Below, one piece after another: positions 3,771-23,621 of a DNA stretch of 64,000 nt; position 1 is the first letter of the stretch; every line of letters starts with the position of its first letter. The notes beneath the pieces are model-generated. The model saw nothing but the letters and a program-made list of their open reading frames with translations. It was not told where the DNA came from and did no database searches. The stretch lies in the sequence record NC_019401.1; one strand, given 5' to 3'. The translations under genes were made by a program, and so were the position numbers.

Positions 3771-3803
3771 GCCAGAGAAATGGCGTCGCCCACAGGGTGC
3801 GGA
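3771..3803 (+). ncRNA. two-hairpin element E1+
   Basis: TTGACA(3733)-18-TACTAT, then GCCA-GAGAAA-TGGC, GTC, GCCCACAGGGTGCGG. Confidence 0.55.
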
Positions 3804-3842
3804 GATCTGCCTATTGATATTTAAATGAATTTTGGATACAAT

Positions 3843-3875
3843 TCCGCACCCTGTGGGTCAAGGAGTTCCGCCTCC
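3843..3875 (-). ncRNA. two-hairpin element E1-
   Basis: Minus strand TTGCAT-17-CATAAT, then GGAG-GCGGAA-CTCC, TTG, ACCCACAGGGTGCGG. Confidence 0.55.
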
Positions 3876-4124
3876 ATGTAAGATATTATGCCAGTACTGC
3901 GATCATAATGCAAGTACTTTTTGTGATTTTCTTTAAAAAAGTTTCCCCTTCTATATACGTATAAAGGAAGCGTTTAGAGCGTGTCAGATCCTGGGGCTTA
4001 CAGTTTTGTACTTTATACTTTATAAAGCCGTGTAAAGCGTCCTATGCGTTCTATGTTTGCGTATGTGTATATAGAGAAGAAAAAGGCTGTTAGAAAGAAT
4101 TTTATAAAAACTTGTATAAAGTAC

Positions 4125-4152
4125 TTGCAAGGTTTTTTCGGTGTGATAGTAT
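4125..4152 (+). promoter_or_regulatory. sigma70 promoter with AGTACT overlapping -35
   Basis: TTGCAA-16-TAGTAT. Confidence 0.55.
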
Positions 4153-4256
4153 TAACCACGTCGAACAGGACAACGCTCTTTAAAAACTTGCTGGTGAATA
4201 CTTAAACATGCCTCCAGGTACTTTGAAAAAAGAATCTGAGAGAATGAAAAAAGTAC

Positions 4257-4284
4257 TTGACGGCAAGATTAGAAAGTGTAGAAT
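4257..4284 (+). promoter_or_regulatory. sigma70 promoter
   Basis: AGTAC-TTGACG-16-TAGAAT with TG extension. Confidence 0.6.
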
Positions 4285-4290
4285 GTTCAA

Positions 4291-4440
4291 TATCGAAAGG
4301 CGGCAAGGTTCGCCGGATGGTAGGAAACGGTGGCGGGGCGATTCAGTACTGCTACAGTGATAAGCGAAAAGAGCTATCACAGCGTTATAAAGGTTAACAT
4401 AACTGTTAACGTCCTATCTGCCGCCCGACGATGCTTTCTG
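4291..4440 (+). ncRNA. candidate structured small RNA
   Basis: Promoter upstream, no ORF; GGCG/CGCC, GGTAGGA/TCCTATC, GTGAT..AGC/GCT..ATCAC and GTTAAC/GTTAAC stems. Confidence 0.4.
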
Positions 4441-4582
4441 TACTGTAAAAGGTACGAAAGAAAAAAGATTCAGAAAGTTATCAAAAAGTACTTGACTGCC
4501 TGAATCGCACGATGTAAGATGTTAAGCAAGCCAGATGGCTAACCCAAAATTCAAAATTTAACTTTTAAGAAGGTATATAATC

Positions 4583-5257
4583 ATGACTACTACTAACACC
4601 ACTAAAGCCGCAAAAGTTACTCTGAACTCTATCGTGTTCGCTGCCGCCCCGGTTCTGCGTGAACTGAAAGAAGGTGAGTCTTACACCAAAACCGAAATGA
4701 AGCAGTTTGAAAAAGAACTGGCCGAACATGTTCGCACTACGTCGCTGGATCTGGCACGTTACATCGTGAACAAAACCGAAAACACCGACCTGATTTCCAA
4801 ACTGCTGGCGGCGACGGTGGAAGCGATTCCTTCTGTGGTTGATGAAGTGCTGAAAGCGAAACAGGAAGAAGAAGCCCGCAAAGCGGAAGAAAAACGCAAA
4901 GCGGAAGAAGAACGTCAGGCCCAGCTCCAGGCCGCCGCTGAAGAACTGGAGAAGAAAAAACAGGATATGCTTAAAGTTCTGACTGATAACGGCGTGGATC
5001 TGGAAGTCGCCAAAGCGATGGTAGCCGCTGGTGCGAAAAACCTGGCTCCGGCTCATGCGGTGAAAAACTCTTACGAACGTGTATCCTGCACTATTGAAGG
5101 CAATCAGTACGATGTTCCGGTGCGTGGCAACATGTCTCAGGCACTGAAAGACCTGGCAGCGAAATACGGTTTCGCCGATGACCGCGAAGGCTTTATCGAA
5201 AAATTCCGCGATGAACCTGCAACGGCGAACGCTGAAGAAAACACCGCCGAAGCGTAA
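4583..5257 (+). CDS. highly expressed early coiled-coil protein, C-terminus resembles H-NS/MvaT DNA-binding domain
   Basis: Strong host-like codon bias; coiled coil; RGNMSQALKDLAAKYG resembles MvaT-type GGNHKTLKEWKAKWG. Confidence 0.75.
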   Translation: MTTTNTTKAAKVTLNSIVFAAAPVLRELKEGESYTKTEMKQFEKELAEHVRTTSLDLARYIVNKTENTDLISKLLAATVEAIPSVVDEVLKAKQEEEARKAEEKRKAEEERQAQLQAAAEELEKKKQDMLKVLTDNGVDLEVAKAMVAAGAKNLAPAHAVKNSYERVSCTIEGNQYDVPVRGNMSQALKDLAAKYGFADDREGFIEKFRDEPATANAEENTAEA

Positions 5258-5404
5258 TACCAAAAGTAATACGGCAAGGGGGCTAGAAAGCCCCCTAAGC
5301 CTTTCTAACAGTACTGTAATACATTTCCTCAAAAGTACTGTTAGAAACGCTTAGAATCAATCCTACAGCGTTTTACGATACATTTTTAATTGAGAGTAAA
5401 CGCT

Positions 5405-5674
5405 ATGGAACTAAAACCACTTTCTGAACTCCGCGATAAAAAAACCATTGTCGCCAGGACAATGATCCACACTTCCCCACGTCAAAAGGTTTTATCTGGC
5501 TATCTGGTTTTTGTGCTGGATGGTAAACTAATACAACGCCGGATCTATGATATGGCTTATAATAGTACTTTTAATAGTGCTATGTATATAGTTTACAAAG
5601 GCGTAAACTATGCCGTAGATCTTGCCTGTAAGACGATTAGCGGGGCTTTCAGTGTTCAAACGTTGAAAGTATAA
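5405..5674 (+). CDS. hypothetical early protein
   Basis: ATG 5405 preferred over TTG 5390; followed by terminator. Confidence 0.7.
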   Translation: MELKPLSELRDKKTIVARTMIHTSPRQKVLSGYLVFVLDGKLIQRRIYDMAYNSTFNSAMYIVYKGVNYAVDLACKTISGAFSVQTLKV

Positions 5675-5685
5675 GCCTACAATCA

Positions 5686-5720
5686 AAAGCCCTTAGAGAA
5701 CGTGCTAAGGGCTTTATATT
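5686..5720 (+). terminator. intrinsic terminator
   Basis: AAAGCCCTTAG/CTAAGGGCTTT stem. Confidence 0.7.
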
Positions 5721-5796
5721 TGATTTTAAAAAATCCTTGCAATAAACTTTCAAACGTGTAGAATTACTTATATCGAAAGAATGTGGAGTAAACAAG

Positions 5797-6189
5797 ATGG
5801 AAAGTAAAGCTAAGTTTGAACAATACAGATTAGTTTTGGATGTACTGATTCAAATGAAAGATTGTATTGACCGCGATGATACTTATACTACAGTACTGGA
5901 TAAGTCATTCAATCTTACCCGATCCCTGGGTATCTGCTGGCATGTATATGTTCACACTCCACCAGCGGAGATCACTGGTATCGGATCGGACTATCTTGAA
6001 CCTGCATTCATTGCGTTAGGGCTTGATCGTGAATATCCGGTTGAAAGCCAGGTTGATACTGATTCGCCGCGAATCCTGCACTTTTCACAGCGTAACCTGT
6101 ACGATCCTGATAACGAGTGCGGAAAGTTACGGATCAAGTTGGTTAATGATTTGATTCAGTACTTTGAAACAGAATTACAAAAGTCTTAA
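5797..6189 (+). CDS. hypothetical early protein
   Basis: GGAG RBS and own promoter. Confidence 0.8.
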   Translation: MESKAKFEQYRLVLDVLIQMKDCIDRDDTYTTVLDKSFNLTRSLGICWHVYVHTPPAEITGIGSDYLEPAFIALGLDREYPVESQVDTDSPRILHFSQRNLYDPDNECGKLRIKLVNDLIQYFETELQKS

Positions 6190-6258
6190 AAAGTACTTGT
6201 ATATTAATTTAGAATCTGTATAATACGTAAGTATAGAGAAACAACAGAGATTAAGAAA

Positions 6259-6543
6259 ATGCAAATTACACTTAACGGATTTACTTTTGTTAAGAACGCA
6301 AATGGTACTGATAACATCCAATCAGTACTTAAAAACAAAGACAATAAAGCATTAGGCGGCATTGTCAAAGAAGGTAACAAGATGGCGAAGCTTGAACGTC
6401 TGAAACAATCGCCGGAAACGTTAGATTTCCTTTGTAAAGTACTGGAAGAAACAAATCAAGTTTATTCAGTACAGAAAGCGGCGAAACCACGTAATAAGTA
6501 CAAAGGTAAATTTAATCCCAACATTCATTCAGTTGGTGCATAA
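6259..6543 (+). CDS. hypothetical basic early protein
   Basis: Own promoter at about 6197-6223. Confidence 0.75.
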   Translation: MQITLNGFTFVKNANGTDNIQSVLKNKDNKALGGIVKEGNKMAKLERLKQSPETLDFLCKVLEETNQVYSVQKAAKPRNKYKGKFNPNIHSVGA

Positions 6544-6555
6544 ATCTTTACAAAA

Positions 6556-6591
6556 CGGGGGTTGACATCAGCCCCCGAAAAATGCAATAAT
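6556..6591 (+). promoter_or_regulatory. terminator-promoter fusion cassette A1
   Basis: CGGGGGTTG-ACAT-CAGCCCCCG hairpin containing TTGACA; AATAAT at 6586. Confidence 0.7.
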
Positions 6592-6599
6592 GTTTACAA

Positions 6600-6633
6600 G
6601 CCGGAACAAAGGCGTAGCCCATAGGATGCGGAG
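6600..6633 (+). ncRNA. two-hairpin element E2+
   Basis: GCC-GGAACAAA-GGC, GTA, GCCCATAGGATGCGG. Confidence 0.55.
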
Positions 6634-6671
6634 ATCTATCTATTGTTTTTTATTTTAATTTTAGATAGATC

Positions 6672-6704
6672 TCCGCACCCTATGGGTTAGGACGTTTCGC
6701 CGTC
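6672..6704 (-). ncRNA. two-hairpin element E2-
   Basis: Minus strand TTGACA-17-TATTAT, then GACG-GCGAAA-CGTC, CTA, ACCCATAGGGTGCGG. Confidence 0.55.
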
Positions 6705-6879
6705 TTGATAGTAATAATAGCAGTACTGAAAAGCCTTGTCAAGCAAAAAAATGGGGAACTTTCCTTGCTCCCCTGTAAATGTTTCAAAGGCATATATTAG
6801 ACTACTGCGAAGCGTTGTTAATCGCAGGTAGTACTATAACAGAACGTGGCAGAGATCGCAAATATATTTTGATGCTTAA

Positions 6880-6966
6880 TATACTTTTAAACGTGAAAAG
6901 TACTTGCAAAGAATGATTAAAAGAGTATACTTAACTTATCGAAACAAACGAGAGGATTTAAAAATG
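6880..6966 (+). repeat. promoter-RBS-ATG cassette, copies at 9235-9321, 14429-14515, partial 7213-7303
   Basis: TATACTTTYAAACGWGAAAAGTACTTGCAAAGAAT...TATCGA..AACGA..AGGATTTAAAAATGG repeated ahead of unrelated ORFs. Confidence 0.8.
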
Positions 6967-7236
6967 GCTAGTTACAGTGCGTCAATGATTGTTAAGGATT
7001 TAGCTGGAAAGCCGTGTTTAGCTTGCGGTTCCTTTGGTAACATTGCGATAGATGGTAGATTATCTATTTCCAGGGCGATAGAGATCGCGGAGGAAAGTTT
7101 TAAGAAAGAATCCAAATTTCAAAACAGCGAATACTTGGGATTTGTAATTGAGAAAACTTCTCGATTCGTTGAATATCGTAAACCGAGTATTATCGGTAAT
7201 AAAGAAGTAAAAACTTTTAAAGAACTTGAACGATAA
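6964..7236 (+). CDS. hypothetical early protein
   Basis: Start reassigned to ATG after GAGGA RBS. Confidence 0.75.
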   Translation: MASYSASMIVKDLAGKPCLACGSFGNIAIDGRLSISRAIEIAEESFKKESKFQNSEYLGFVIEKTSRFVEYRKPSIIGNKEVKTFKELER

Positions 7237-7300
7237 TACTTGTAAAGTGGGTAATGGTTTAGTACTGTTACCCTATCGAAACGAACTTGAGGATTTAAAA

Positions 7301-7747
7301 ATGGGAACTCCAGCATGTATCGCAGTAATGAACGATAAGAAAGAAGTTACCTGGACTTATGTTAACTATGACGGGTATTTAAACGGCGTAGGCAGAATGT
7401 TGAACGAGTATTACAACGATCTGATAATGGCTAAAAAATTGATTTCGATGGGTGATATTTCAGTACTGAAAAAGACGATGGATTGCCCGGTCGGTCACTC
7501 ATTCGCTACACCTGCCCCGGATTGCACAGTATTCTATGAGCGTGATCGAGGTGAAGATAATGTAAAACCACGTCACGGCGATTATGCTATGTTCCTGCGT
7601 TGTAATAAGGGGACAATTAGTTATATCTACACGGATGGACAATGGCATATAGTACGAGAAACAAGTAAACGCGGGGCAATTTTAGACCGTCATAAATTGT
7701 TAGTACTTGGCGAAGTGTTATCCGGTTTATATGATTTTTCGCGTTAA
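7301..7747 (+). CDS. conserved phage hypothetical protein (YDGY / HSF / RDRGE motif family)
   Basis: YVNYDGYLNGVG..GDIS..HSF..YERDRGE pattern; start reassigned after GAGG RBS. Confidence 0.8.
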   Translation: MGTPACIAVMNDKKEVTWTYVNYDGYLNGVGRMLNEYYNDLIMAKKLISMGDISVLKKTMDCPVGHSFATPAPDCTVFYERDRGEDNVKPRHGDYAMFLRCNKGTISYIYTDGQWHIVRETSKRGAILDRHKLLVLGEVLSGLYDFSR

Positions 7748-7760
7748 TTAAATTGCATAT

Positions 7761-7793
7761 AGTACTTGCAAAATTCTGCGAGTACTATATAAT
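7761..7793 (+). promoter_or_regulatory. AGTACT-paired promoter B1
   Basis: AGTACT at 7761 and 7781; TTGCAA..TATAAT. Confidence 0.75.
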
Positions 7794-7823
7794 TACTTAT
7801 ATCTTAAACGGGAGAACAAAGAA

Positions 7824-8279
7824 ATGAAAGCTAACGAATTTGAACAGAAAGTAAGAGAATCCTTTTTGAAGTACTTTCCAAACGGTCATATTCGTTTATC
7901 TAAACTTGCGTTAGGTGGCGGCTTACATATTGCTTGTGGCCTGATTGCAAACGTTAAAGAGATCACCGCCACTATTCGCGAAAATGATCCGTTAAACGTT
8001 TCTATCTTTATTCATGATAACTATGTTTTCAATGATTCAGAAACGGATCTTGATAATGTAGTACTTGAATTTGACAATTCGCATATATCGGTTATTCCTG
8101 ATAATCCGCATATGTACAGCCAATCGCACAAGATCGCCGCACGTAAAATTAACGCTGCACCAGAAAAAGCACTGCAAAACCTGGATAAGTATTTTAAACG
8201 TGTTAAAGATGTTGTATCCGAGCAAGCGGCATTAAATCGGATTATCAAACAAGATACAATTGATCCGAAATATCTGTAA
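7824..8279 (+). CDS. hypothetical early protein
   Basis: GGAG RBS, promoter B1. Confidence 0.8.
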   Translation: MKANEFEQKVRESFLKYFPNGHIRLSKLALGGGLHIACGLIANVKEITATIRENDPLNVSIFIHDNYVFNDSETDLDNVVLEFDNSHISVIPDNPHMYSQSHKIAARKINAAPEKALQNLDKYFKRVKDVVSEQAALNRIIKQDTIDPKYL

Positions 8280-8290
8280 AGTTATTAATC

Positions 8291-8326
8291 AAAGTACTTG
8301 CAAAATGAATGCGAGTACTTTATAAT
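8291..8326 (+). promoter_or_regulatory. AGTACT-paired promoter B2
   Basis: AAAGTACTTGCA-7-TGCGAGTACTTT inverted repeat, then TATAAT. Confidence 0.8.
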
Positions 8327-8356
8327 TAACTTATATTAAGTAAGAGAGAAAACAAA

Positions 8357-8779
8357 ATGAAATTAGATGTAAGAGGTTATTCTGAAGGTGGCTACTGTTT
8401 CCTGTACGATGGTAAGCCGGTTTCCATTCATGAAGCAATGGTCGCGAACGGCGGGAAGTTTTCAAAGCGTACTACTAACGCCTTGAACCGTAGAAATCTG
8501 CCTAGTGTTGAATGGCTAAAAGTGTTTGAAAAAGATGTAGCCACGTTACATACTGGCTTAGATGCTCCTGGTGCCCGTAAAGTACTGAGGGATCATTATA
8601 ACATCGATGTACTTAAACGTGACTATTATCATTTGTCAAGTTCAGAAGTATACGATCTTAAAACTGTATACAAAATGTGCAAATATAAAGTAACAGTTAA
8701 AGAACCTGCACACTCTGAGATGTACTACTTTTTCCAGTACTTGTCAAGGAAAGATGTGCATCCACTCGAAAAGAATTAA
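8357..8779 (+). CDS. hypothetical early protein
   Basis: Promoter B2, GAGAG RBS. Confidence 0.8.
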   Translation: MKLDVRGYSEGGYCFLYDGKPVSIHEAMVANGGKFSKRTTNALNRRNLPSVEWLKVFEKDVATLHTGLDAPGARKVLRDHYNIDVLKRDYYHLSSSEVYDLKTVYKMCKYKVTVKEPAHSEMYYFFQYLSRKDVHPLEKN

Positions 8780-8784
8780 TTAAA

Positions 8785-8821
8785 GAAAGGGGTTGACTTC
8801 GGTTAGCCCCTTCTGTATACT
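8785..8821 (+). promoter_or_regulatory. terminator-promoter fusion cassette A2
   Basis: GGGGTTGAC-TTCG-GTTAGCCCC; TTGACT-17-TATACT. Confidence 0.75.
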
Positions 8822-8830
8822 GTATTCATT

Positions 8831-8862
8831 GGCAGATAAAGCCGCAAGCCCATAGGGTGCAT
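8831..8862 (+). ncRNA. two-hairpin element E3
   Basis: GGC-AGATAAA-GCC, GCAA, GCCCATAGGGTGC. Confidence 0.55.
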
Positions 8863-8942
8863 AATTGTATCTATAATATTAAGAATAAAAAAAAGATAAA
8901 ATAATCCTTGCAATCAAACGATGAATAGATTAATATGTAGTT

Positions 8943-9228
8943 CTCGACACGCAATAACGCGATAACCTAAAAGAAGGAAAGCAGATATTCTATCAGGCTC
9001 ATATCCTGATAGCAGTACTAATAACCTGAGACACATAGCACACCGATAAGTCTATGTTAGGATGCATTAGCGAAAGCACATCACTGGATGAATGCATAGT
9101 ACTGGTAGAATATGCGGTATTATCTTTATAAGAGAATATATGAGATAAACTTAATGCGGCCTTAATGGGCGTGGCGTGTATCAAAAGCCACCGTTAAACG
9201 CTCCCTTAATGGGGGCGTTTTTCGTTTT
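8943..9228 (+). ncRNA. candidate 285-nt structured RNA with own promoter and terminator
   Basis: TTGCAA-17-TAATAT at 8908-8936; nested stems; ends in AAACGCTCCC/GGGGGCGTTT terminator; no plus-strand ORF of 60 aa or more. Confidence 0.65.
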
Positions 9229-9318
9229 GGATAATATACTTTTAAACGAGAAAAGTACTTGCAAAGAATGATAAAAGTAGTATACTTATCTATATCGAAA
9301 ACGAAAGAGGATTTAAAA

Positions 9319-9675
9319 ATGGTAGATATGTTCTGGAGTAGTTCGTGCGGCAGAATTGAACTTGAGTTCAAAGATCCTGAGCAGGTATTCACTATGTTTC
9401 ATAGTGGCGATTGTGAGGATTCTGTTAAGGCACAGATTCCGTACTTCCTTCCTCAATTGCAGAACATTGATCGTTCGCGTATTATTTCAGTACTAAATGA
9501 ATATTCTGGTGATTGGACAATTGGGGAGTTATTGGAACTTACACAGGAAGATCTTTACATTAAACTGTTATGGATCGCTGCTGGTGATAAACACGACGAA
9601 ATCAATATGGATGAATTGTGTGAATGGCAGAATGATTTTTTGGCAGAACGTGAACGCGAAAAACACGGCGAATGA
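9319..9675 (+). CDS. conserved phage hypothetical early protein
   Basis: HSGDC..QL..ID..L.EY..W..LLWIAAG pattern; start reassigned after cassette RBS. Confidence 0.8.
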   Translation: MVDMFWSSSCGRIELEFKDPEQVFTMFHSGDCEDSVKAQIPYFLPQLQNIDRSRIISVLNEYSGDWTIGELLELTQEDLYIKLLWIAAGDKHDEINMDELCEWQNDFLAEREREKHGE

Positions 9676-9681
9676 TCATTA

Positions 9682-9716
9682 AAAGTACTTGCAATAACAT
9701 GCGAGTACTTTATAAT
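9682..9716 (+). promoter_or_regulatory. AGTACT-paired promoter B3
   Basis: AAAGTACTTGCA-6-TGCGAGTACTTT, then TATAAT. Confidence 0.8.
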
Positions 9717-9748
9717 GATTGTACTTATTAAGTGAGAGGAAAAACAAA

Positions 9749-10129
9749 ATGAATCCAGTTTATGACGTTCACGCTGATATTGTAACCACGATGGAAAAAG
9801 TTTTTGCTGGTGGTTATGATGCACTCGCTTTTCGTAAAGAGCATGACAGATTACAAAAGCGAATTGATAACCTCAAATTGGTTAGGGATCGTTATGCTAC
9901 CAACACACTACTTACCAGTATGATTGGTAATGTAATGATGAAAAAACTGTGCCTGGCATATGAATTTGAAAAAACTCTGTATTGTACTGCCAATAACGTT
10001 CCGGGTCGTCCCAATACTGATTTTCTTCATTCATTGAATTTGTCAAGTGCTGAATGGGATGCTTTACCACAATATCACGTGTGGATTGCATCGGGTAAAA
10101 TTTACAGTACTGTGCATAAATCCAAATAA
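9749..10129 (+). CDS. hypothetical early protein
   Basis: GAGG RBS; start reassigned. Confidence 0.75.
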   Translation: MNPVYDVHADIVTTMEKVFAGGYDALAFRKEHDRLQKRIDNLKLVRDRYATNTLLTSMIGNVMMKKLCLAYEFEKTLYCTANNVPGRPNTDFLHSLNLSSAEWDALPQYHVWIASGKIYSTVHKSK

Positions 10130-10652: not shown

Positions 10653-10685
10653 GGGGTTGACATATGTTAGCCCCGTCTGTATACT
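10653..10685 (+). promoter_or_regulatory. terminator-promoter fusion cassette A3
   Basis: GGGGTTGAC-ATAT-GTTAGCCCC; TTGACA-17-TATACT. Confidence 0.75.
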
Positions 10686-10691
10686 GTATTC

Positions 10692-10722
10692 ATTGAAACA
10701 AATTAGCCCACAGGGTGCGGAG
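10692..10722 (+). ncRNA. two-hairpin element E4
   Basis: ATT-GAAACA-AAT, TA, GCCCACAGGGTGCGG. Confidence 0.5.
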
Positions 10723-10933
10723 GTGTATCTATTAAAAAAGTACTGTACATGTATCCAGTACCTATCAAATATAAATTCAAACGAAAAAAGTACTTGCAAT
10801 GGATGATAAAAGGAGTATAATTGTTTACATGGAAGGGCAAGAGGTGAAAGGTAATGAGTCGCAGTACTGAAATAGCTCTGTTTATCTTTGTACTAGTAGC
10901 ACTATCTATTAATTTTAATTGAGAGGATTCAAA

Positions 10934-12793: not shown

Positions 12794-12808
12794 TCAAAAA
12801 GTACTCTA

Positions 12809-12840
12809 GTACTGGTGTAATAGCCAGTACTGTTTTTTTA
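12809..12840 (+). terminator. intrinsic terminator with AGTACT stem
   Basis: AGTACTGG-TGTAATAG-CCAGTACT plus T run. Confidence 0.7.
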
Positions 12841-12870
12841 TGTACAGTACTATATCTCATAGACAGATCT

Positions 12871-12903
12871 CTGCACCCTATGGGCTTGAGCATTGTTCTT
12901 GCT
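12871..12903 (-). ncRNA. two-hairpin element E5-
   Basis: Minus strand TTGACA-17-TATATT, then AGCA-AGAACAA-TGCT, CAA, GCCCATAGGGTGCAG. Confidence 0.55.
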
Positions 12904-13029
12904 ATGTGTTAATAATATACCAGTACTTATATAATGTCAATGAAATAATTATACTTTCAAACGTGAATTTCCCCTTGCATTTATGGTTGAGTACTGTATA
13001 ATACTTGTATTGAATCGGGAGCATGAACA

Positions 13030-17278: not shown

Positions 17279-17285
17279 TTCAAAT

Positions 17286-17321
17286 AAAAGGTTGACTACG
17301 GTCGGCCTTTTTTGTTATACT
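17286..17321 (+). promoter_or_regulatory. terminator-promoter fusion cassette A4
   Basis: AAAAGGTTGAC-TACG-GTCGGCCTTTT; TTGACT-18-TATACT. Confidence 0.75.
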
Positions 17322-17330
17322 TCTTTCATT

Positions 17331-17362
17331 GGCAGATAAGCCGTTAGCCCATTGGGTGCATA
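17331..17362 (+). ncRNA. two-hairpin element E6
   Basis: GGC-AGATAA-GCC, GTTA, GCCCATTGGGTGC; about 55 nt identical to the E7 locus. Confidence 0.55.
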
Positions 17363-17527
17363 GTTGTATCCTTTTTAAGTACTTTCTACTTTGAAAATAT
17401 TATACAAAAACTTGTAATTTCTTCTTGCAGATTAATCTGAATTTGGTATTATATACACATCGAGACGGGGCAACGTCTTAGATAAACTAAGCGAGCGAGA
17501 AAGAAAATGCGGCGTAAATGAATTTAT

Positions 17528-17564
17528 AAAAGGAGTTGACAGCGGTTGACTCCTTTAGTATAAT
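17528..17564 (+). promoter_or_regulatory. terminator-promoter fusion cassette A5
   Basis: AAAGGAGTTGAC-AGCG-GTTGACTCCTTT; TTGACA-17-TATAAT. Confidence 0.7.
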
Positions 17565-17609
17565 CATCCCATTCAAACAAATGTAGTACTTTCTAAAAGG
17601 CATAATATC

Positions 17610-17837
17610 ATGAGAAACATCGTCGAAGTACTGTTTAACGCATCAAGAGAAGTTTCCGAAGAAGAACGCCAGGCTTCCGAAGTCATTAGCGATCTTTGCC
17701 AAAAGCATGAGCTTGTCTTACCTGAACAACTTATGGCTATGAATTACTTTTCAGGTATTGACTTCAATCTGATTGTATCAAAGGTTAGTACTCTTAACAC
17801 GCCGTTGATACCCGAAGCAATGTTTTATACACATTAA
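17610..17837 (+). CDS. hypothetical early protein
   Basis: AAGG RBS, promoter A5. Confidence 0.7.
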   Translation: MRNIVEVLFNASREVSEEERQASEVISDLCQKHELVLPEQLMAMNYFSGIDFNLIVSKVSTLNTPLIPEAMFYTH

Positions 17838-17845
17838 TAAGTAAT

Positions 17846-17882
17846 AAAAGGCTTGACACGTTCGAGCCTTTTTTGTTATACT
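17846..17882 (+). promoter_or_regulatory. terminator-promoter fusion cassette A6
   Basis: AAAAGGCTTGA..TCGAGCCTTTT; TTGACA-18-TATACT. Confidence 0.75.
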
Positions 17883-17891
17883 TCTTTCATT

Positions 17892-17922
17892 GGCAGATAA
17901 GCCGTTAGCCCATTGGGTGCAT
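17892..17922 (+). ncRNA. two-hairpin element E7
   Basis: GGC-AGATAA-GCC, GTTA, GCCCATTGGGTGC. Confidence 0.55.
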
Positions 17923-18055
17923 AATAGTACTAGTACTATAAGAAAATAAAAATATAAATTCAAACGAAAAAAAACTTGCATTCAAATAACAGTACTGGCA
18001 TAATACTTACATGGATTAGGGAATGGCCTTAATCATTTTAAGCGAGAATACTATC

Positions 18056-18631
18056 ATGAAATTCGAAGAACTGAACGAAGAACAAAAAGCTAGAGCAATT
18101 GAAAAACATCGCGATATCAACGTTGACTATGACGAATGGTATGATTTTGTAAAAGAAGAACATCATTCTAAACTGGAAGAAGTTGGTTTTTCTGGTGTAG
18201 AGTCTGCATATTCTGGATTCTGGTCACAAGGTGACGGTGCAAGTTTTACTGCTGATAGCCTGGATATTGAGAAGTTTTTACGTGCAACTAAACGCTGGAC
18301 TTATTATCGTCCGTTGCATGAAATGATCCGTATTAATGAAATATGGGCTAAAGTAGTTCGTACTACTCACCGCTACTGTCACGAAAACACAACTCAAGCA
18401 GAGTTACACGGTGAACATTACCTTAATTTAACATCGCGTCAAGAATCTTTGTATGAAGAACTTGAAAAGGAAATTGATGAATATATCACACGTGCAGGTC
18501 AAGAGTACTATCGCGATCTGAATACTGCATATGATGATTTAACTTCTGACGAACAAGTTAAACTATCAATCATTGCAAATGATATGGACTTTGAAGAAGA
18601 CCCACGTGAATCAGGCATAACTTATCTTTGA
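18056..18631 (+). CDS. conserved MGE protein (family often auto-annotated as antitoxin of toxin-antitoxin stability system)
   Basis: F.EL.EEQK.RA..W..YSGFWSQGDGASF..Y..LTSDEQV..IIAND.DF pattern; start reassigned. Confidence 0.75.
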   Translation: MKFEELNEEQKARAIEKHRDINVDYDEWYDFVKEEHHSKLEEVGFSGVESAYSGFWSQGDGASFTADSLDIEKFLRATKRWTYYRPLHEMIRINEIWAKVVRTTHRYCHENTTQAELHGEHYLNLTSRQESLYEELEKEIDEYITRAGQEYYRDLNTAYDDLTSDEQVKLSIIANDMDFEEDPRESGITYL

Positions 18632-18640
18632 CAAGTACTC

Positions 18641-18678
18641 AAAGGGGATTGACTAGTTCAATCCCTTTGTTGTATAAT
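18641..18678 (+). promoter_or_regulatory. terminator-promoter fusion cassette A7
   Basis: GGGATTGA-CTAGT-TCAATCCC; TTGACT-18-TATAAT. Confidence 0.7.
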
Positions 18679-18698
18679 AACAATACGGAGACAATAGA

Positions 18699-18797
18699 AT
18701 GGTTGAGTATACAACTATCAATCCGGTATATGAAGAAGGGAAAGCAATGAACAAAATTGCTTTATGTTTTATACTTTTTATAGTACTTTTATTATGA
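18699..18797 (+). CDS. possible 32-aa membrane peptide
   Basis: GGAG RBS after promoter A7; MVEYTTINPVYEEGKAMNKIALCFILFIVLLL. Confidence 0.35.
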   Translation: MVEYTTINPVYEEGKAMNKIALCFILFIVLLL

Positions 18798-18945
18798 GAC
18801 TACTTAAACAGCATAGCGAAGTATCTTTGTATAGTAGTATGGGATTGTTTTTAGTATCAAAAGGCCGGACAAAAATAACTTGCAAAAGTGGTGTAACTGC
18901 ATTATACTTCTTTCATCAACTAACCAATATTAAGTGAGTACTGAA

Positions 18946-19278
18946 ATGAGAAAACCTAACGTAGAAATTCTTTGTGATTCACATCACGGAATTTATATTC
19001 CGTCTATCATGATTCAACGTCTGGTAGATAATGGCTGGCGTAACATTCCTGATGATGCAGTTGAAATTCTCAAAGATCCTAATCATGAATGTTATTGGGA
19101 AACGTGGCAAGAAGTACTGGACAATGCTGAATGGCATGATGCAAGTACTAGCCAGGTTTTCAAACTGCATCATGACGGCGATCTGTTTGCAGTATGCCCT
19201 GAAAGTTGTACGCCACAAGAGTATCATCATATCTATGGTGAATATCCTGAATGGTACAACCAGGAAGAAGAAGTATGA
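18946..19278 (+). CDS. conserved phage hypothetical early protein
   Basis: HHGIYIP..YWETWQEVLDNA..HDGDLFA pattern. Confidence 0.8.
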   Translation: MRKPNVEILCDSHHGIYIPSIMIQRLVDNGWRNIPDDAVEILKDPNHECYWETWQEVLDNAEWHDASTSQVFKLHHDGDLFAVCPESCTPQEYHHIYGEYPEWYNQEEEV

Positions 19279-19411
19279 TCCAGTATTGGTGGCTTGAGCC
19301 AGTACTCTATCTGATTGTAGCACTCACCGCATTATATGTAGTTGTTACAATCTTTGGTTAAATTCAAAAAGTACTTGACTCCGGTCAGGTACTTTGCTAT
19401 TATGTATACAT

Positions 19412-19445
19412 AGCAAGAACAATGCTTTAGCCCATAGGGTGCAGC
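19412..19445 (+). ncRNA. two-hairpin element E8
   Basis: TTGACT promoter at about 19375; AGCA-AGAACAA-TGCT, TTA, GCCCATAGGGTGCAG (same hairpin 1 as E5-). Confidence 0.55.
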
Positions 19446-19565
19446 AGTGTAGCTATAGTATAAGGATGTAACTGAAACAAATATAAAGTTAAATGAAAAA
19501 TCCCCTTGCTTTCTTTCTTTCGTGTGGTATACTTTAATTATTGAAACAGAGCGGAGTAGAAAGAA

Positions 19566-19808
19566 ATGGAAAAGTCTGGAATTGAATTTAAAGTCCGTAA
19601 GTGGTCTGAACATGGTGCTCGCCGCCCATTCGACGTGGTAGCACTGGATCACGACAACAACAAACAGCACTACCAGCCAGGCTGCACTTTCAGTACTGAA
19701 GATGGGGCAAAGCGTCATCAGGCAATACTGGAAAAACGTATTAAAGATGTACCAAACAGTATTAAGTTTATTCGTGACTGCTGGCCTGTAGACGGCGGTA
19801 TTGAATAA
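19566..19808 (+). CDS. hypothetical early protein
   Basis: GGAG RBS and own promoter. Confidence 0.75.
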   Translation: MEKSGIEFKVRKWSEHGARRPFDVVALDHDNNKQHYQPGCTFSTEDGAKRHQAILEKRIKDVPNSIKFIRDCWPVDGGIE

Positions 19809-19833
19809 AGATTTAAATAAAGATTCAAATGAA

Positions 19834-19870
19834 AAAAGTACTAGACAAAAACGATTTAGTACTTTATAAT
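19834..19870 (+). promoter_or_regulatory. AGTACT-paired promoter B10
   Basis: TAGACA-17-TATAAT, AGTACT at 19837 and 19858. Confidence 0.7.
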
Positions 19871-19899
19871 TTAAAAACTAAATGAGTGGAGACACGAAA

Positions 19900-20787
19900 A
19901 TGTTAAAATTATACAAAGGTATTAACGGCCTGGCACTGAAATCAAATCGCCCTCTTAACAGAGCGGAACTTCTGGAAGTAGTCCCTTCTATCTTTGCAAT
20001 TGAAGGGCATTCTTCACGTAGCTCCCGTTTCGCACCAGTTGCAACGATTGATGTACTGGATCGCCTGGCACAAGAAAACTACTTTCCGATGTTTGCTATT
20101 CAGTCGCAAACACGCGATGCATCAAAACGCGATTATACTAAACATATGATCCGTTTGCGTCAGCCGGGTAAGCAGGAAGGTGAAGCAAACGAAATCATCC
20201 TGGTAAACGCCAATGATGGCACAAGTGCATATCAGTTGATGGCAGGTCAATTCCGTTTTGTATGTTCTAACGGTTTAGTTATGGGTGATATGTCTCATAA
20301 CACGAAGATCTACCACAAAGGCACTGACATTATGGACGATGTTATTGAAGGTGTTTACACGGTGGTTAAAGACTTTGATGAAATCGAACGCTACAAAAAG
20401 GAAATGAAGCAGATTCAACTTAGTACTGAACAACGCGATTCCTTTGCAATCGCCGCCTATATCATGAAAGAAGGTTTACCGGAAAACGGCGATTGGGCGA
20501 ACGCAGTATATCAGCCACGAGCATTACTTTCTACGAAAGACCTGAACACGCTGGATCGTTATGATAACAGTCTGTACAGTACTTTTAACACTGTACAGCA
20601 ACATATGATGGCTGGTGGGCAACGTGGCTATAATCCACATACTGGCCGCCGTCGCTCAAGTCGTGAAGTAACGAACATCGACAAAAACATTGATCTGAAT
20701 AGTACGTTGTGGCGTACTGCGATGAAAATGGTAGACCAATATAGTCTACTGAAAAACGCAGAACCTGAAGAATTAATTCAGTTCTAA
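19900..20787 (+). CDS. DUF932 (DUF945/YubP-like) protein
   Basis: PSIFA..HSSRS.RF..T..L..E.YFP..QS.TRD..KR.YTKHMIRLR; NANDGTSAYQLMAGQFRFVCSNGLV; LYSTFNTVQ. Confidence 0.88.
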   Translation: MLKLYKGINGLALKSNRPLNRAELLEVVPSIFAIEGHSSRSSRFAPVATIDVLDRLAQENYFPMFAIQSQTRDASKRDYTKHMIRLRQPGKQEGEANEIILVNANDGTSAYQLMAGQFRFVCSNGLVMGDMSHNTKIYHKGTDIMDDVIEGVYTVVKDFDEIERYKKEMKQIQLSTEQRDSFAIAAYIMKEGLPENGDWANAVYQPRALLSTKDLNTLDRYDNSLYSTFNTVQQHMMAGGQRGYNPHTGRRRSSREVTNIDKNIDLNSTLWRTAMKMVDQYSLLKNAEPEELIQF

Positions 20788-20794
20788 GTCAAAT

Positions 20795-20830
20795 TGGGGG
20801 TTGACAACGATTAGCCCCCTAAGCTATACT
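20795..20830 (+). promoter_or_regulatory. terminator-promoter fusion cassette A8
   Basis: GGGGGTTGA..TTAGCCCCC; TTGACA-18-TATACT. Confidence 0.7.
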
Positions 20831-20863
20831 TGCATTTGACAACGTAAACGGAGTAACGGAACC

Positions 20864-21202
20864 ATGAGCATGAATTTTTTCATCATGACCAGTACAACGC
20901 AAGACGGTCACACCGAGTACGGCAAAACTGAATACGTTATCGTAGGTCAGGATAAAGCGGGCCGCCGTTTCCGCCTTGATACTTCTGTATTATACAATGA
21001 CGATAAAACAGACCGTGAATGCCGCGATATTCAAAATCGTCGTATTATGCGTATGCTGCAAAGTATCGCGTATGGTCAGAAGATCGATATGCAATTCTGG
21101 AAAGAAATCGAACCTGCATACGAATCTGAGGCGTTTTATAAGTTAGATACTAAGCAACGCATGAAGATCGAACAGGAACATGTCGATATGTATGGCGTTT
21201 AA
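20864..21202 (+). CDS. hypothetical early protein (paralog of 21787..22134)
   Basis: KTEY.IV....G.R.RL..W.EI.P.Y.S shared. Confidence 0.8.
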   Translation: MSMNFFIMTSTTQDGHTEYGKTEYVIVGQDKAGRRFRLDTSVLYNDDKTDRECRDIQNRRIMRMLQSIAYGQKIDMQFWKEIEPAYESEAFYKLDTKQRMKIEQEHVDMYGV

Positions 21203-21227
21203 CTTATAGTACTGCGTAACGTAATAC

Positions 21228-21258
21228 AAGGGCAACCATTCAACGGTTGCCCTTTTTT
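21228..21258 (+). terminator. intrinsic terminator
   Basis: AAGGGCAACC/GGTTGCCCTT plus T run. Confidence 0.85.
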
Positions 21259-21465
21259 AATTCATTTTTTTTTAAATTAACACTTGACAAATCAAATTTA
21301 ATAATAATTTGTACAAACCTATACACGAGTACTGTACAATTTTTTTATATTTTTCAGATAATTATGTGATGCAAGTTTTGTAAATGATGCTAAGGAACGA
21401 TTGACAGGCATAGGATAATTCCGATACAATAGCCCTAAGTTAACAAGCGAAGCGAGTATAATAAT

Positions 21466-21687
21466 ATGAGTAGTTCAGTTAATAGCAGTGAATTGGAAGC
21501 ATTGAAAATCCGTTGGTATCAATTAGCCATTGAAGGCAAGCCAGTGATCGGCGAAGATGAAAAGTTGTTCAACTCCCTCCCCCGCTACGTTCAAGAGGAA
21601 CTAAAGAAGGCATATCTTTTCGGCGTGAACGATGAATGCGAAACCTGGATGATCCCACAACAAGTAACGGCAAAAGTCAAAAACTAA
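21466..21687 (+). CDS. hypothetical early protein (paralog of 22592..22768)
   Basis: L..L...WY.L..EG..I.G.D..LFNSL....EL..AY..G shared. Confidence 0.8.
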   Translation: MSSSVNSSELEALKIRWYQLAIEGKPVIGEDEKLFNSLPRYVQEELKKAYLFGVNDECETWMIPQQVTAKVKN

Positions 21688-21718
21688 TCCAGTACTATCA
21701 CGCATATAAACATACTCC

Positions 21719-21754
21719 AGGGGGTTGACTTTGGTCAGCCCTTTTTGCTATACT
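21719..21754 (+). promoter_or_regulatory. terminator-promoter fusion cassette A9
   Basis: GGGTTGAC-TTTG-GTCAGCCC plus T run; TTGACT-18-TATACT. Confidence 0.75.
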
Positions 21755-21786
21755 TCTATTACACCAAAGCAAGAGAGTACAAAACC

Positions 21787-22134
21787 ATGTTAGACGTTTA
21801 TATCAGAAGTGATTTAGTATCAGATGGCGTTGATGAATGCGGTACTCCAAAAGAAAAGACAGAGTACTACATCGTAGCAGAATCTGAAACAGGTCAGCGT
21901 ATCAGATTGGAAAATGCTTCTATCGTGAACCGCGATTTTTCCGATGAACAATGTGTCGCGTACTTAGAACCAACAGTTAATAAAATCAAAAATCATTTGG
22001 CTGGTGGCGGTAAACTTAATCCAGATCTATGGTACGAAATCGATCCATGCTACGGGTCACAACGTTACATGGATTTAGATAGTTCTGGCTTCTTCTACCA
22101 CCGCGAGAAACGAGAAGATACCTATCGCAATTAA
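21787..22134 (+). CDS. hypothetical early protein (paralog of 20864..21202)
   Basis: Start reassigned downstream of promoter A9. Confidence 0.8.
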   Translation: MLDVYIRSDLVSDGVDECGTPKEKTEYYIVAESETGQRIRLENASIVNRDFSDEQCVAYLEPTVNKIKNHLAGGGKLNPDLWYEIDPCYGSQRYMDLDSSGFFYHREKREDTYRN

Positions 22135-22336
22135 GTAAACACCAATTCAAGAAAATTTCGAGTACTTGTCAAATCAAATACAAGTATTCGAAAATTTAGT
22201 TTAGTGTCGAGTACTTGTATAAATTTTCGCGTATGCACCAGCGTATACATATATGCACATATAATGCGTAATATGTACTTGCATACGCCTACACATACAT
22301 GTATACTATCATTGTCAACTACAGAGGATCTATATC

Positions 22337-22531
22337 ATGAATGCACAAATTAGACTCTTAGCGAATCAAGTACTGAACAAACGTTACTTGGGCATTGAAG
22401 AAGCAATGGAGCGTATCATCGGCAAATACACTGAACAAAACGCTGATGTACACGCCGCCGTATTCAATGAGATTCAAGATATTCTGAATCCTCATGGTAC
22501 TGGTGAAGATGAAGTTTATTGCGAAAGTTAA
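22337..22531 (+). CDS. hypothetical early protein
   Basis: GAGG RBS. Confidence 0.75.
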   Translation: MNAQIRLLANQVLNKRYLGIEEAMERIIGKYTEQNADVHAAVFNEIQDILNPHGTGEDEVYCES

Positions 22532-22591
22532 TTTGACAACGCGATGTAAGTACTGATATACTTACTACACATTAATCGAGAGGGTAACAAC

Positions 22592-22768
22592 ATGGTACAG
22601 GTAGACTTAGCAGAACTCAGAACTAAATGGTACAACCTGGGGAAAGAAGGTACTGAAATCTCAGGTGATGATGCAGTACTGTTTAACTCCCTCGATCCGT
22701 GGCAAAAGCGGGAACTCCACAATGCCTACGTTGAAGGAACTACGGAAGCCCTTGCAACCGTAGCATAA
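22592..22768 (+). CDS. 58-aa hypothetical protein (paralog of 21466..21687)
   Basis: Not in ORF track. GAGG RBS; MVQVDLAELRTKWYNLGKEGTEISGDDAVLFNSLDPWQKRELHNAYVEG. Confidence 0.8.
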   Translation: MVQVDLAELRTKWYNLGKEGTEISGDDAVLFNSLDPWQKRELHNAYVEGTTEALATVA

Positions 22769-22790
22769 CCCTAACAGGCTATCGTATCAT

Positions 22791-22822
22791 AAAAGTGTTG
22801 GCAAAGTCCAGCACTTTTTTTC
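22791..22822 (+). terminator. intrinsic terminator
   Basis: AAAAGTGTTGG/CCAGCACTTTT plus T run. Confidence 0.75.
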
Positions 22823-22880
22823 GTTTTTAAGCAAATAAATTCCTTGACCTTCCCTGCGATATTTGAGAGAATACCCACAA

Positions 22881-22912
22881 GCCAGAACAAAGGCGTAGCC
22901 CACAGGGTGCAT
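22881..22912 (+). ncRNA. two-hairpin element E9+
   Basis: TTGACC promoter; GCC-AGAACAAA-GGC, GTA, GCCCACAGGGTGC. Confidence 0.55.
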
Positions 22913-22952
22913 AGGCACGTCCAAAATTCAGTACTCAAATTTTAGATAGATC

Positions 22953-22985
22953 TCCACACCCTGTGGGTCAGACCGTTACACCGGT
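22953..22985 (-). ncRNA. two-hairpin element E9-
   Basis: Minus strand TTGCAT-16-TATAAT, then ACCG-GTGTAA-CGGT, CTG, ACCCACAGGGTGTGG. Confidence 0.55.
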
Positions 22986-23167
22986 TTATGTACTTATTAT
23001 ACATCAACCACGGATCAATGCAATACCCTGGAGAAAATAAAATTATAAATTCAAACATAATATTCGCTTGAATTCTTTGTTCAGTTTGATAATATACCTA
23101 GACCAAAACAAACAACGGCAAGACTATACCGCCTAAATCGTCAGGCCGGATTATACCCAAAACCCTG

Positions 23168-23533
23168 ATGGAGTATCAAAAAATGAGATTAAGTGAGCTT
23201 CGCGGTATCCTGACAGTACTGGAATATCAGGCACATCAAAAGGGAAACATTGATCCGCTGGTGGAGTTATTCAGCGTTGAATTAGATGGCGATGTTTTCC
23301 TTACTGTAGATATTAATGCTATCCAGGCAGATCCAGCAGGTCAGTTAACCCCAGGTGGATCTATTCACCTGCCATTAAAAGAAATTACTACTCGTGGATT
23401 CGTGGTAGTGTATGGTGATAAAGGCCGTGAGGATTGTATTGTGATTCAGGCCACAAATAAGAAAGAAGCTGAAAGATTGTTCTTGAAACATTTCAGTACT
23501 TATGAACTGAAAACAATCAACGAAGAAATCTAA
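23168..23533 (+). CDS. hypothetical early protein
   Basis: ORF; start may be ATG 23183 after GGAG. Confidence 0.75.
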   Translation: MEYQKMRLSELRGILTVLEYQAHQKGNIDPLVELFSVELDGDVFLTVDINAIQADPAGQLTPGGSIHLPLKEITTRGFVVVYGDKGREDCIVIQATNKKEAERLFLKHFSTYELKTINEEI

Positions 23534-23545
23534 ATCTTTACAAAT

Positions 23546-23581
23546 CGGGGGTTGACATTAGCCCCCGAAAAATGCAATAAT
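23546..23581 (+). promoter_or_regulatory. terminator-promoter fusion cassette A10 (near-identical to A1)
   Basis: About 50-bp direct repeat of 6541-6592. Confidence 0.75.
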
Positions 23582-23589
23582 ATGATCAA

Positions 23590-23621
23590 GCCAGAAAATT
23601 GGCGTGACCCATAGGGTGCGG
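23590..23621 (+). ncRNA. two-hairpin element E10
   Basis: GCCA-GAAAAT-TGGC, GTG, ACCCATAGGGTGCGG. Confidence 0.55.

Follow-up and report, generated by a model that had tools for sequence, protein, structure and literature searches.

A conserved and apparently undescribed family of promoter-fused RNA elements in RaK2-like jumbo phages

Several described systems place small structured RNAs close to a promoter. Lambdoid nut sites and the boxB-boxA-boxC signals of rrn operons put, in promoter-proximal early RNA, a small hairpin with a free stem and a purine-rich loop beside a conserved segment. Phage HK022 carries two put RNAs, each of ~70 nt with long stems. Lambda 6S RNA (PR'-tR'), StxS and the terminal-repeat noncoding RNAs (ncRNAs) of phage PA5oct combine a strong promoter, a short transcript lacking an open reading frame (ORF) and a terminator. 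RNA anti-CRISPRs (Racrs), which are solitary repeat units, are small phage RNAs with their own promoter and a short GC hairpin, possibly serving as protein decoys. In T4-like phages, promoter early stem-loop (PeSL) cassettes join a stem-loop or terminator to a near-consensus sigma-70 early promoter and are repeated in a plastic early region, with homology breakpoints and indels at the cassettes (PMC2839356, PMC4122927). In these, a Shine-Dalgarno sequence and start codon directly follow the promoter (PMC4122927). Here, these systems are compared with a promoter-fused element, predicted to fold as RNA, that occurs 13 times in nt 1-64000 (hereafter the window, 64,000 nucleotides of record NC_019401.1, 100% identical) of Cronobacter phage vB_CsaM_GAP32, a Mimasvirus and RaK2-like jumbo myovirus with a genome of 358,663 bp.

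The element shares something with each of these. Its upstream half belongs to the PeSL kind, and this part is known. What is new is the conserved, structured, strand-specific leader of 48-60 nt that follows the promoter, which is multicopy, confined to a repeat, and found partly in antisense units and in inverted, face-to-face units without an ORF. Unlike nut and rrn sites, the element has no boxA, its loop is usually of 6-7 nt rather than a GNRA-like pentaloop, and it is present in 10-13 copies per genome, each fused to a promoter at +1 and a third of them antisense and terminated. As with put, two adjacent stem-loops in nascent early RNA could act on polymerase without other factors; here, however, helices have only 3-6 bp and fold with unexceptional energy, and copies in antisense contexts make read-through an unlikely purpose. 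No homology in sequence or structure connects the element to lambda 6S, StxS or the PA5oct RNAs, and it forms a multicopy family with a single common 5' domain. Racrs copy a host CRISPR repeat, whereas the pattern of this element has no match among the enterobacterial genomes scanned.

We conclude that the element represents a genuine RNA family, conserved in RaK2-like phages and apparently not described before. An earlier note, made from the letters of the window alone, had listed 13 copies with their positions, and two counts return the same list. The 13-mer RCCCAYWGGGTGC, allowed at most one mismatch, matches the window 13 times at those positions, where 0.12 matches are expected and none of 100 shuffles reached 13. 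A covariance model (R1), built from 21 uniform, gap-free copies (alignment A2) and searched with filters off, found the identical 13 copies over the 64 kb with E values from 5.5e-18 to 1.4e-9, the next best match having E=0.17. Over the other 294.7 kb of the GAP32 genome it found nothing credible (best E=0.31). All copies thus lie within 3,769-23,635, which is 5.5% of the genome. Rfam, searched over the 64 kb at gathering thresholds, gave no match to a known RNA family; in E-value mode it gave just miRNA-precursor matches far under threshold, at the palindromes of paired copies. The papers searched, on GAP32, CBB, fEgEco12, PA5oct and jumbo-phage transcriptomics, hold no account of the element.

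The 13 cassettes, with their parts, are as follows.
Cassette 1, 3733..3816, + strand: sigma-70 promoter 3733-3762, element 3769-3816; + member of face-to-face pair 1.
Cassette 2, 3830..3913, - strand: element 3877 down to 3830, promoter ~3885-3913 (approximate limits); - member of pair 1.
Cassette 3, 6557..6645, + strand: stem-loop over the -35 box 6557-6577, promoter 6562-6591, element 6598-6645; + member of pair 2.
Cassette 4, 6659..6773, - strand: element 6706 down to 6659, promoter 6742-6714, upstream stem-loop 6773-6753; - member of pair 2.
Cassette 5, 8789..8876, + strand: stem-loop 8789-8810, promoter 8793-8821, element 8828-8876; heads an ORF-less unit that reaches to terminator 9196-9220.
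Cassette 6, 10657..10734, + strand: promoter 10657-10685, element 10692-10734, with a minimal hairpin 1 (UUG-AAA-CAA).
Cassette 7, 12807..12940, - strand: solitary antisense copy; promoter 12940-12912, element 12905 down to 12857, bidirectional terminator 12832-12807.
Cassette 8, 17286..17375, + strand: terminator/-35 stem-loop 17286-17311, promoter 17292-17321, element 17328-17375, with UUUUU after hairpin 3.
Cassette 9, 17846..17936, + strand: stem-loop 17846-17872, promoter 17853-17882, element 17889-17936.
Cassette 10, 19368..19458, + strand: stem-loop 19368-19395, promoter 19375-19403, element 19410-19458.
Cassette 11, 22844..22926, + strand: promoter 22844-22872, element 22879-22926; + member of pair 3.
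Cassette 12, 22940..23024, - strand: element 22987 down to 22940, promoter ~22996-23024 (approximate limits); - member of pair 3.
Cassette 13, 23547..23635, + strand: stem-loop over the -35 box, promoter 23552-23581, element 23588-23635.

The record annotates nothing at these elements except a few ARNold stem-loops or terminators. Its coding sequences (CDS) from 3147 to ~26 kb are all on the + strand, and nearly all encode short hypothetical proteins.

The region that holds the cassettes corresponds to a terminal repeat in a relative. In CBB, the terminal repeat is 22,456 bp long, with support from read depth and pulsed-field gel electrophoresis (PMC5259590). CBB is a close relative of GAP32 (88% identity), and its repeat maps by gene-by-gene synteny to ~2.8-24.7 kb of the GAP32 record, with an offset of 2781 at the first pair. 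GAP32 itself would, by this synteny, carry the terminal repeat. The GAP32 record (window 1-2800 and the record end) appears to open ~2.8 kb to the left of the terminus defined in CBB and to have a single copy of the repeat region; the terminal repeat has probably been collapsed in the deposited sequence. The terminal repeats defined in Kae01 (19,736 bp) and in fEgEco12 (20,993 bp; PMC13070987) are both similar in size to that of CBB.

Wherever a repeat is defined, confinement to it holds among the relatives, which span at least four genera and carry 9-12 copies per genome. Every covariance-model match in CBB, Kae01 and fEgEco12 falls inside the defined repeat, even though the loci searched reach 3-20 kb beyond it, and the copies of Yersinia phage Yen9-04 are all in its first 12.2 kb. 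Twelve of the 13 GAP32 copies are syntenic with CBB, and thus the cassettes are not highly mobile; cassette 13 and the adjacent gene GAP32_045 are both missing from CBB, as a single indel. A promoter-independent pattern scan of IMG/VR returned 21 stretches, all of which, except one 5.8-kb fragment, lie on RaK2-like contigs of 109-378 kb, genomes of GAP32, CBB and BF size among them. An earlier, looser pattern anchored on the promoter was discarded, its matches being mostly chance hits and unrelated GC-rich contigs with ACCCAYTGGGTGC iteron arrays. When the linker-core-block pattern TARCCCAYAGGGTGCNNNNNTNYRTC was run against single genomes representing 185,579 species of bacteria and archaea, it matched once, in a chance-like manner (a metagenome-assembled Dehalococcoidia genome), and never in an enterobacterium. 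Mimicry of a CRISPR repeat or of a host RNA is disfavored by this absence of a bacterial counterpart among the 185,579 species genomes, and a likeness to helix 45 of 16S rRNA, or to the hairpin of type I-F repeats, judged by eye, was dropped since it extends to some copies only.

The statistics of the family come from 76 copies in 10 sources, the window and nine related loci. In 72 of these 76 copies a sigma-70 promoter with a score of 9/12 or better stands in register, with a spacer of 16-18 nt, as against 2.6% of random positions; the earlier claim that each copy starts beside a dedicated sigma-70 -10 box is borne out in this form. The distance from the -10 hexamer to model position 1 is exactly 6 nt in 55 copies, position 1 is A in 72, and a TGn extended -10 is found in 46. 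The exact spacing means that model position 1 is the canonical +1, and this, in turn, makes the element the first 48-60 nt of the predicted transcript. Several cassettes have the -35 box overlapped by a stem-loop (at 6557, 8789, 17286, 17846 and 19368) that is at the same time a terminator, against transcription that comes either from upstream or from the opposite direction; the stem-loop of cassette 3 (6557-6577) reads as a terminator on the - strand.

From the +1 A, the parts follow in a fixed order: hairpin 1 (H1) from +3, a 3-nt linker (mostly YUA or YUG), the invariant segment RCCCAYAGGGUGC, a spacer, and a pyrimidine/purine block. Across the 76 copies, H1 has 39 distinct stems of 3-5 bp, closed over loops that are mostly GAGAAA, GCGAAA, AGAUAA or AGAACAA(A). 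In the alignment of all copies (A3), each of the four pairs has changed on both sides in 23-32 sequences, 93% of the cells are paired, none of 500 shuffles equals the score, and no slide of the register comes close. Because A3 was fitted to the model, a control that needs no alignment was added; in it the copies reach a hairpin score of 8.83, and shuffles 6.16 +/- 0.26. The covarying first hairpin proposed earlier therefore stands for most of the family. It does not stand for ~12 of the 76 copies, 10692+ of the window among them, where an A-rich stretch (CAUNGAAACAANCUA) takes its place.

A different leader in the window, at 17415-17480 (+), has a TTGCAG-N17-TATTAT promoter followed by an H1-like hairpin (GACG-GGGCAA-CGUC) and no RCCCAYAGGGUGC core. 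It may be a degenerate leader or one of another type.

The second hairpin (H2) is formed within the invariant segment by RCCC and GGGU, and 99% of its cells in A3 are paired. Its conservation, also proposed earlier, is upheld, and two kinds of change add to it. Of the R-U pairs that extend the stem, 44 are A-U and 31 are G·U. In three copies (CBB 16112, L030 6358 and Yen9-04 4523) the inner C-G pair has become U-A, converting CCC/GGG to CCU/AGG; these three belong to three phages and differ in their H1 stems and loops. The loop is AYN (3 nt) or UAKA/UUUA (4 nt), with the stem kept in both cases. RNAalifold independently returns H1 and H2.

What had been described as a weak third block is present, and is properly a 6-nt purine-rich spacer ending in U followed by N-Y-R-U-C-Y-R, able to pair with GGGUGC as an alternative hairpin (H3). 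In H3, 89% of cells are paired, and the variation is one-sided and wobble-compatible. Its paired columns show 77 transitions and 13 transversions, whereas neighboring unpaired variable columns show ~157 and 158, counts that come from related copies and hence not from independent events. H2 and H3 use the same GGG and exclude one another; among the minimum-energy folds of the 13 leaders, the two are about equally frequent. Exceptional thermodynamic stability was ruled out as a feature of these leaders (z from -1.4 to +0.6 relative to shuffles).

The strand on which these structures act can be read from mispairs. Cells with G·U outnumber those with A·C by 11:0 in H1, 32:1 in H2 and 204:0 in H3, or 247:1 in total. 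This excess places the structures on the transcribed, RNA-like strand only, and shows that strand to be the functional one. Together with the covariation of H1 and the coupling to promoters, it bears out the earlier argument for function at the level of RNA or single-stranded DNA, specifically that of the transcribed strand.

What follows the element depends on its orientation. Four of the 13 GAP32 copies are antisense to all genes. Solitary antisense copies number six in the five annotated phages. Behind every one of them come an A-run, a hairpin and a U-rich tail; the terminator ends at +86 to +106, and no ORF precedes it. Cassette 7, an ORF-less unit of ~106 nt, is an example. The terminator used is the bidirectional one of the upstream gene, beyond which lies only antisense of that gene. 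Most sense copies, in contrast, have no terminator-like site within 350 nt. Behind each sense copy, and before the gene, comes a second class of promoter, TTGCAA-N16/17-TATAAT, preceded by AAATTCAAAYGAAAAAAGTAC; the sense copies that lack a terminator presumably read through it into the next gene. The earlier statement that no ORF follows the element thus fits the antisense copies, the paired copies and 8828+, and fails for most sense copies, where read-through is the expectation. Promoters of the same TTGCAA class, without the element, stand before most genes of the repeat region (for example at 5737, 6904, 7766, 8298, 9259, 9689, 10794, 12151 and 12431), again usually with AAATTCAAAYGAAAAAAGTAC ahead.

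Paired copies face each other, at a fixed spacing that, like the confinement to the repeat, could not be seen by the earlier note. In GAP32 the start sites of all three pairs, pair 1 (cassettes 1 and 2) included, are exactly 109 nt apart, as they are in all three pairs of CBB; Yen9-04 has them 110 nt apart, fEgEco12 97 nt, and Kae01 115 nt in one pair and 128 nt in another. Four pair members have at +107 to +109 what scores as a terminator, made up of the partner's H1 in reverse complement and of the T-rich complement of the partner's -10 region. Cassette 11 shows this arrangement, with its end at +108. Other members meet their first terminator-like site at or beyond the partner's promoter: 6706- at +151 (the -35 stem-loop of the partner) and 3877- farther upstream, at +174. 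The organization of a stand-alone small-RNA gene, with a promoter of its own, no ORF and an intrinsic terminator within ~50-400 nt, is therefore found in 6/6 solitary antisense copies, in several pair members (+107 to +174) and in 8828+, and is not found in most sense copies.

Two observations concern these units. Pairs spaced by 115-128 nt owe their extra central DNA to a palindrome, AATGATAATCATT or AATGAGAATCATT, found in Kae01 (L003, at 7258-7372 and 981-1108), in Yen9-04 (L125, at 285-412), and in L011 and L066; it closely resembles the core of the enterobacterial Fur box. The unit headed by cassette 5, 8828-9225 (+), runs ~400 nt from element copy 5 to the terminator at 9196-9220 with no ORF, and is a candidate long ncRNA. 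It is nearly restricted to GAP32; Erwinia phage Kaldavass and Xanthomonas phage XbC2 show partial similarity.

The reading that we favor, tentatively and at rather less than an even chance, is that the cassettes exist for the RNA module they make: a small RNA or 5' leader, multicopy and immediate-early, by which a protein is captured or recruited. Here, host sigma-70 RNA polymerase would transcribe each module from its near-consensus promoter. A hairpin close to the triphosphate end is the geometry of a 5' stabilizer in E. coli mRNA decay, and H1 is separated from the 5' end by two unpaired bases. H1 would keep the triphosphate end paired and shielded from 5'-end-dependent decay, and the invariant H2/H3 segment would be a specific handle for a phage or host protein. 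With 13 copies, or 26 if each genome end has the repeat, the RNA would reach a high dose within minutes of infection, so as to titrate or recruit that factor; in the sense orientation, the same module would be the 5' leader of early mRNAs. The main argument is an asymmetry: a strong terminator always stands within ~100 nt behind antisense copies, for which read-through would be harmful, and none is maintained behind sense copies, as one would expect if only the 5' RNA matters; sense copies can be plain leaders because read-through there does no harm. The repeat is the early, host-takeover part of the genome, and a high copy number in the region expressed earliest points to a need for high dosage. 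That ORF-less RNAs can be abundant in such a place is known from RNA-seq of PA5oct, a distant relative, where two from the terminal repeat each account for 1-5% of phage reads (PMC7318152); PA5oct ncRNA001, checked for the core, lacks it and has no homology to the element.

A narrower form of this reading, to which we give about one chance in five, makes the cassettes immediate-early factories of one RNA decoy, the invariant hairpin or switch capturing a host RNA-binding regulator or a defense protein. Transcribed within minutes from as many as 26 consensus promoters, such a structured RNA would serve as a device for counter-defense or takeover, and the 109-nt face-to-face pairs would be units terminated by collision or by the partner, releasing just the element. 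The earlier note had listed decoy small RNAs among its ideas; the idea of a decoy or small RNA has become the favored one.

Several points weigh against the RNA as product. The absence of a real H1 from ~12 of 76 copies is one. Folding energies of the 13 leaders are no better than those of shuffles, and antisense matches to the core (reverse-complement 9-mers) in the phage genome outside the elements are at chance level. Among the 46 proteins of the repeat region (window 3147-24685), homology reveals no RNA-binding partner: Pfam matches only DUF932 (GAP32_039), Band_7 (GAP32_025) and a ParE_like toxin domain, the last in a single CDS with E=1.2e-11. The two RNAs of a face-to-face pair are complementary over 109 nt and could neutralize each other. 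As most sense copies have no terminator, the element might act on early mRNAs in cis only. And in every phage that carries the element, its transcripts are predicted from sequence.

Should it turn out to act as a protein decoy or to modify polymerase, the RNA would bring a multicopy, promoter-fused design to the few functional phage RNAs. RaK2-like jumbo phages (GAP32, CBB, RaK2 and 121Q among them) are candidates for phage therapy and biocontrol, and their early program is almost entirely unannotated; the motif marks in them a distinct class of immediate-early transcription units.

Among the alternatives, the one that survives best, though we think it improbable, is processive antitermination in cis of the nut or put type. 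This would make H1 a counterpart of boxB and the invariant segment a boxA or polymerase-binding site, and the purpose would be to read through the terminators of the repeat. Placement is in its favor: early transcripts would begin with the element, intrinsic terminators are dense in the region around it, and most sense copies run into genes. The form of H1 can be read either way, its short free stem and purine-rich G..AA loop recalling the boxB of lambda and P22, its loops being of 6-7 nt rather than 5 and its stem lacking in ~12 of 76 copies. Against the reading, no boxA, neither CGCUCUUA nor UGCUCUUUAACAA, accompanies any copy; YGCTCTTTAA at no more than one mismatch matches the window 11 times, which is the chance level, with none in or beside an element, and the sole exact match (4174) belongs to another leader. 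That leader is a separate, canonical Nus-type signal (4158-4189) that the phage already has. Every cassette, moreover, re-initiates transcription behind its own stem-loop, and ~15% of copies lack H1. A nut-type site is expected before terminators that guard genes on the same strand, which is loosely true of the sense copies and fails for the antisense ones (4/13). These lead only into antisense of upstream genes and end at strong terminators, and because they face such terminators antitermination makes no sense for them. No N-like protein is recognizable by homology among the 46 repeat-region proteins, N proteins being too short and too diverse for homology to exclude them. Taken together, the lack of boxA, the separate rrn-type site, the terminated antisense copies and the cassette stem-loops do not bear out the antitermination reading of the nut or put type proposed earlier.

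The Nus-type leader deserves its own description. At 4128-4190 (+), a TTGCAA-type promoter precedes a small covarying hairpin, GUC-GAACAG-GAC (~4158-4170), and a boxA-like sequence, CGCUCUUUAAAAACUU (4173-4189), of which the exact CGCUCUUUAA at 4174 occurs once in the window. The repeat region's first rightward operon begins with this leader. The site is kept across two genera, at syntenic positions of CBB, Yen9-04 and Serratia phage BF, there as CGCUCUUUAACAACUU; the GCUCUUUAACAA in that sequence matches the boxA of E. coli rrn operons. With this site present, the phage uses a canonical Nus-type signal once, and a different element 13 times.

More doubtful again is the proposal that the whole is a PeSL-like cassette for regulation and recombination, whose terminator and promoter would punctuate early transcription and allow genes to be shuffled as modules, and in which the leader is merely a generic 5' stabilizer kept uniform by recombination between cassettes. 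The stem-loop that overlaps the -35 box in several cassettes, and with it the upstream half, fits the published definition of a PeSL (PMC4122927), and cassettes similar to this 53-nt half are present in KVP40-like, Aeromonas and many other phages. There are signs of recombination as well. GAP32 8790-8860 and CBB 6492-6562 are 100% identical, with homology stopping at the last base of the 13-mer, and cassette 13 with gene 045 is one indel relative to CBB. Here, however, a conserved structured leader and a second promoter stand where PeSLs have their start codon, and antisense copies have no gene at all. Recombination cannot explain why 13 bases stay invariant in at least four genera beside 39 H1 stems, nor does it explain compensatory and wobble-restricted changes. 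A PeSL-like role in recombination can coexist with the favored reading of the RNA as a protein handle.

Still less probable, in our estimate, is a signal in DNA or in the transcription bubble, where RCCCAYAGGGTGC at +20 to +32 would be an operator or roadblock through which a repressor turns these promoters off, or else, like ops, a hairpin and pause site of the non-template strand that brings a factor to polymerase. Thirteen invariant bases at a fixed distance and orientation from +1 would suit such a signal, as would the partial palindrome CCC-N3-GGG and an end in TG as in ops. Unrelated GC-rich phage contigs, too, have arrays of ACCCAYTGGGTGC that resemble protein-binding iterons. The changes seen in the family speak otherwise: the loop may be 3 or 4 nt, and the CCU/AGG double changes preserve pairing and not the sequence of a half-site. 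H3 spans 18 nt and has 204 G·U cells, a structure impossible in duplex DNA and within a transcription bubble alike, and the covariation of H1 is left unexplained. As for ops, its consensus is GGCGGTAGCGTG, and RfaH contacts G5 and T6. Compared by inspection with this site, the element matches at 8 of 12 positions, having A and Y at the equivalents of G5 and T6 and A, T, C or G at the position after. A sigma-70-dependent pause through the -10-like YAGGGT was ruled out, as the position where A is required varies among A, T, C and G.

The ACCCAYTGGGTGC arrays themselves were met on six IMG/VR contigs (L024, L038, L052, L058, L074 and L095), GC-rich and unrelated, with 8-11 palindromic copies per 0.5-1 kb. 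They look like iterons or protein-binding sites, and their likeness to the core of the element appears coincidental.

That the cassettes prime R-loops or serve as replication origins in the terminal repeat is very improbable: a strong promoter, a G-rich RNA segment and AT-rich DNA after it recall T4 oriF/oriG and the T7 origins in outline only, whereas hairpins in nascent RNA hinder R-loops, 13 copies in both orientations crowd 6% of the genome, and the sequence yields no evidence for the R-loop primers suggested earlier.

Other features of the repeat region may be mentioned. Chi sites (GCTGGTGG) lie at 9806, 13954, 15750, 17117, 20611, 22000 and 23257, all on the + strand; these are seven of the 14 + strand Chi sites of the genome, in a region of ~22 kb where ~0.08 would be expected. 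The repeats of CBB, Kae01, fEgEco12 and Yen9-04 have 7, 12, 10 and 6 such sites on the + strand, which always stop at the repeat boundary. In this orientation they would be read by RecBCD entering from the right end. The RNA motif, the rrn-type boxA leader and the oriented Chi cluster together offer handles on how the repeat is transcribed and protected, and on host takeover.

The self-complementary hexamer AGTACT occurs 5.8 times per kb in the repeat region (2800-24800) and 2.6 times per kb elsewhere, against ~0.34 per kb expected from composition. It makes up the stems of many terminator and promoter stem-loops, such as those at 12807-12832 and 19368-19395.

Just to the left of the first face-to-face pair, at 3385-3640, are iteron-like repeats of GATGGATAGAC and CTGGATGGCTA (a Tandem Repeats Finder array covers 3508-3586). 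They lie ~600-860 nt inside the inferred left genome terminus, and could be related to packaging, to end recognition or to an origin.

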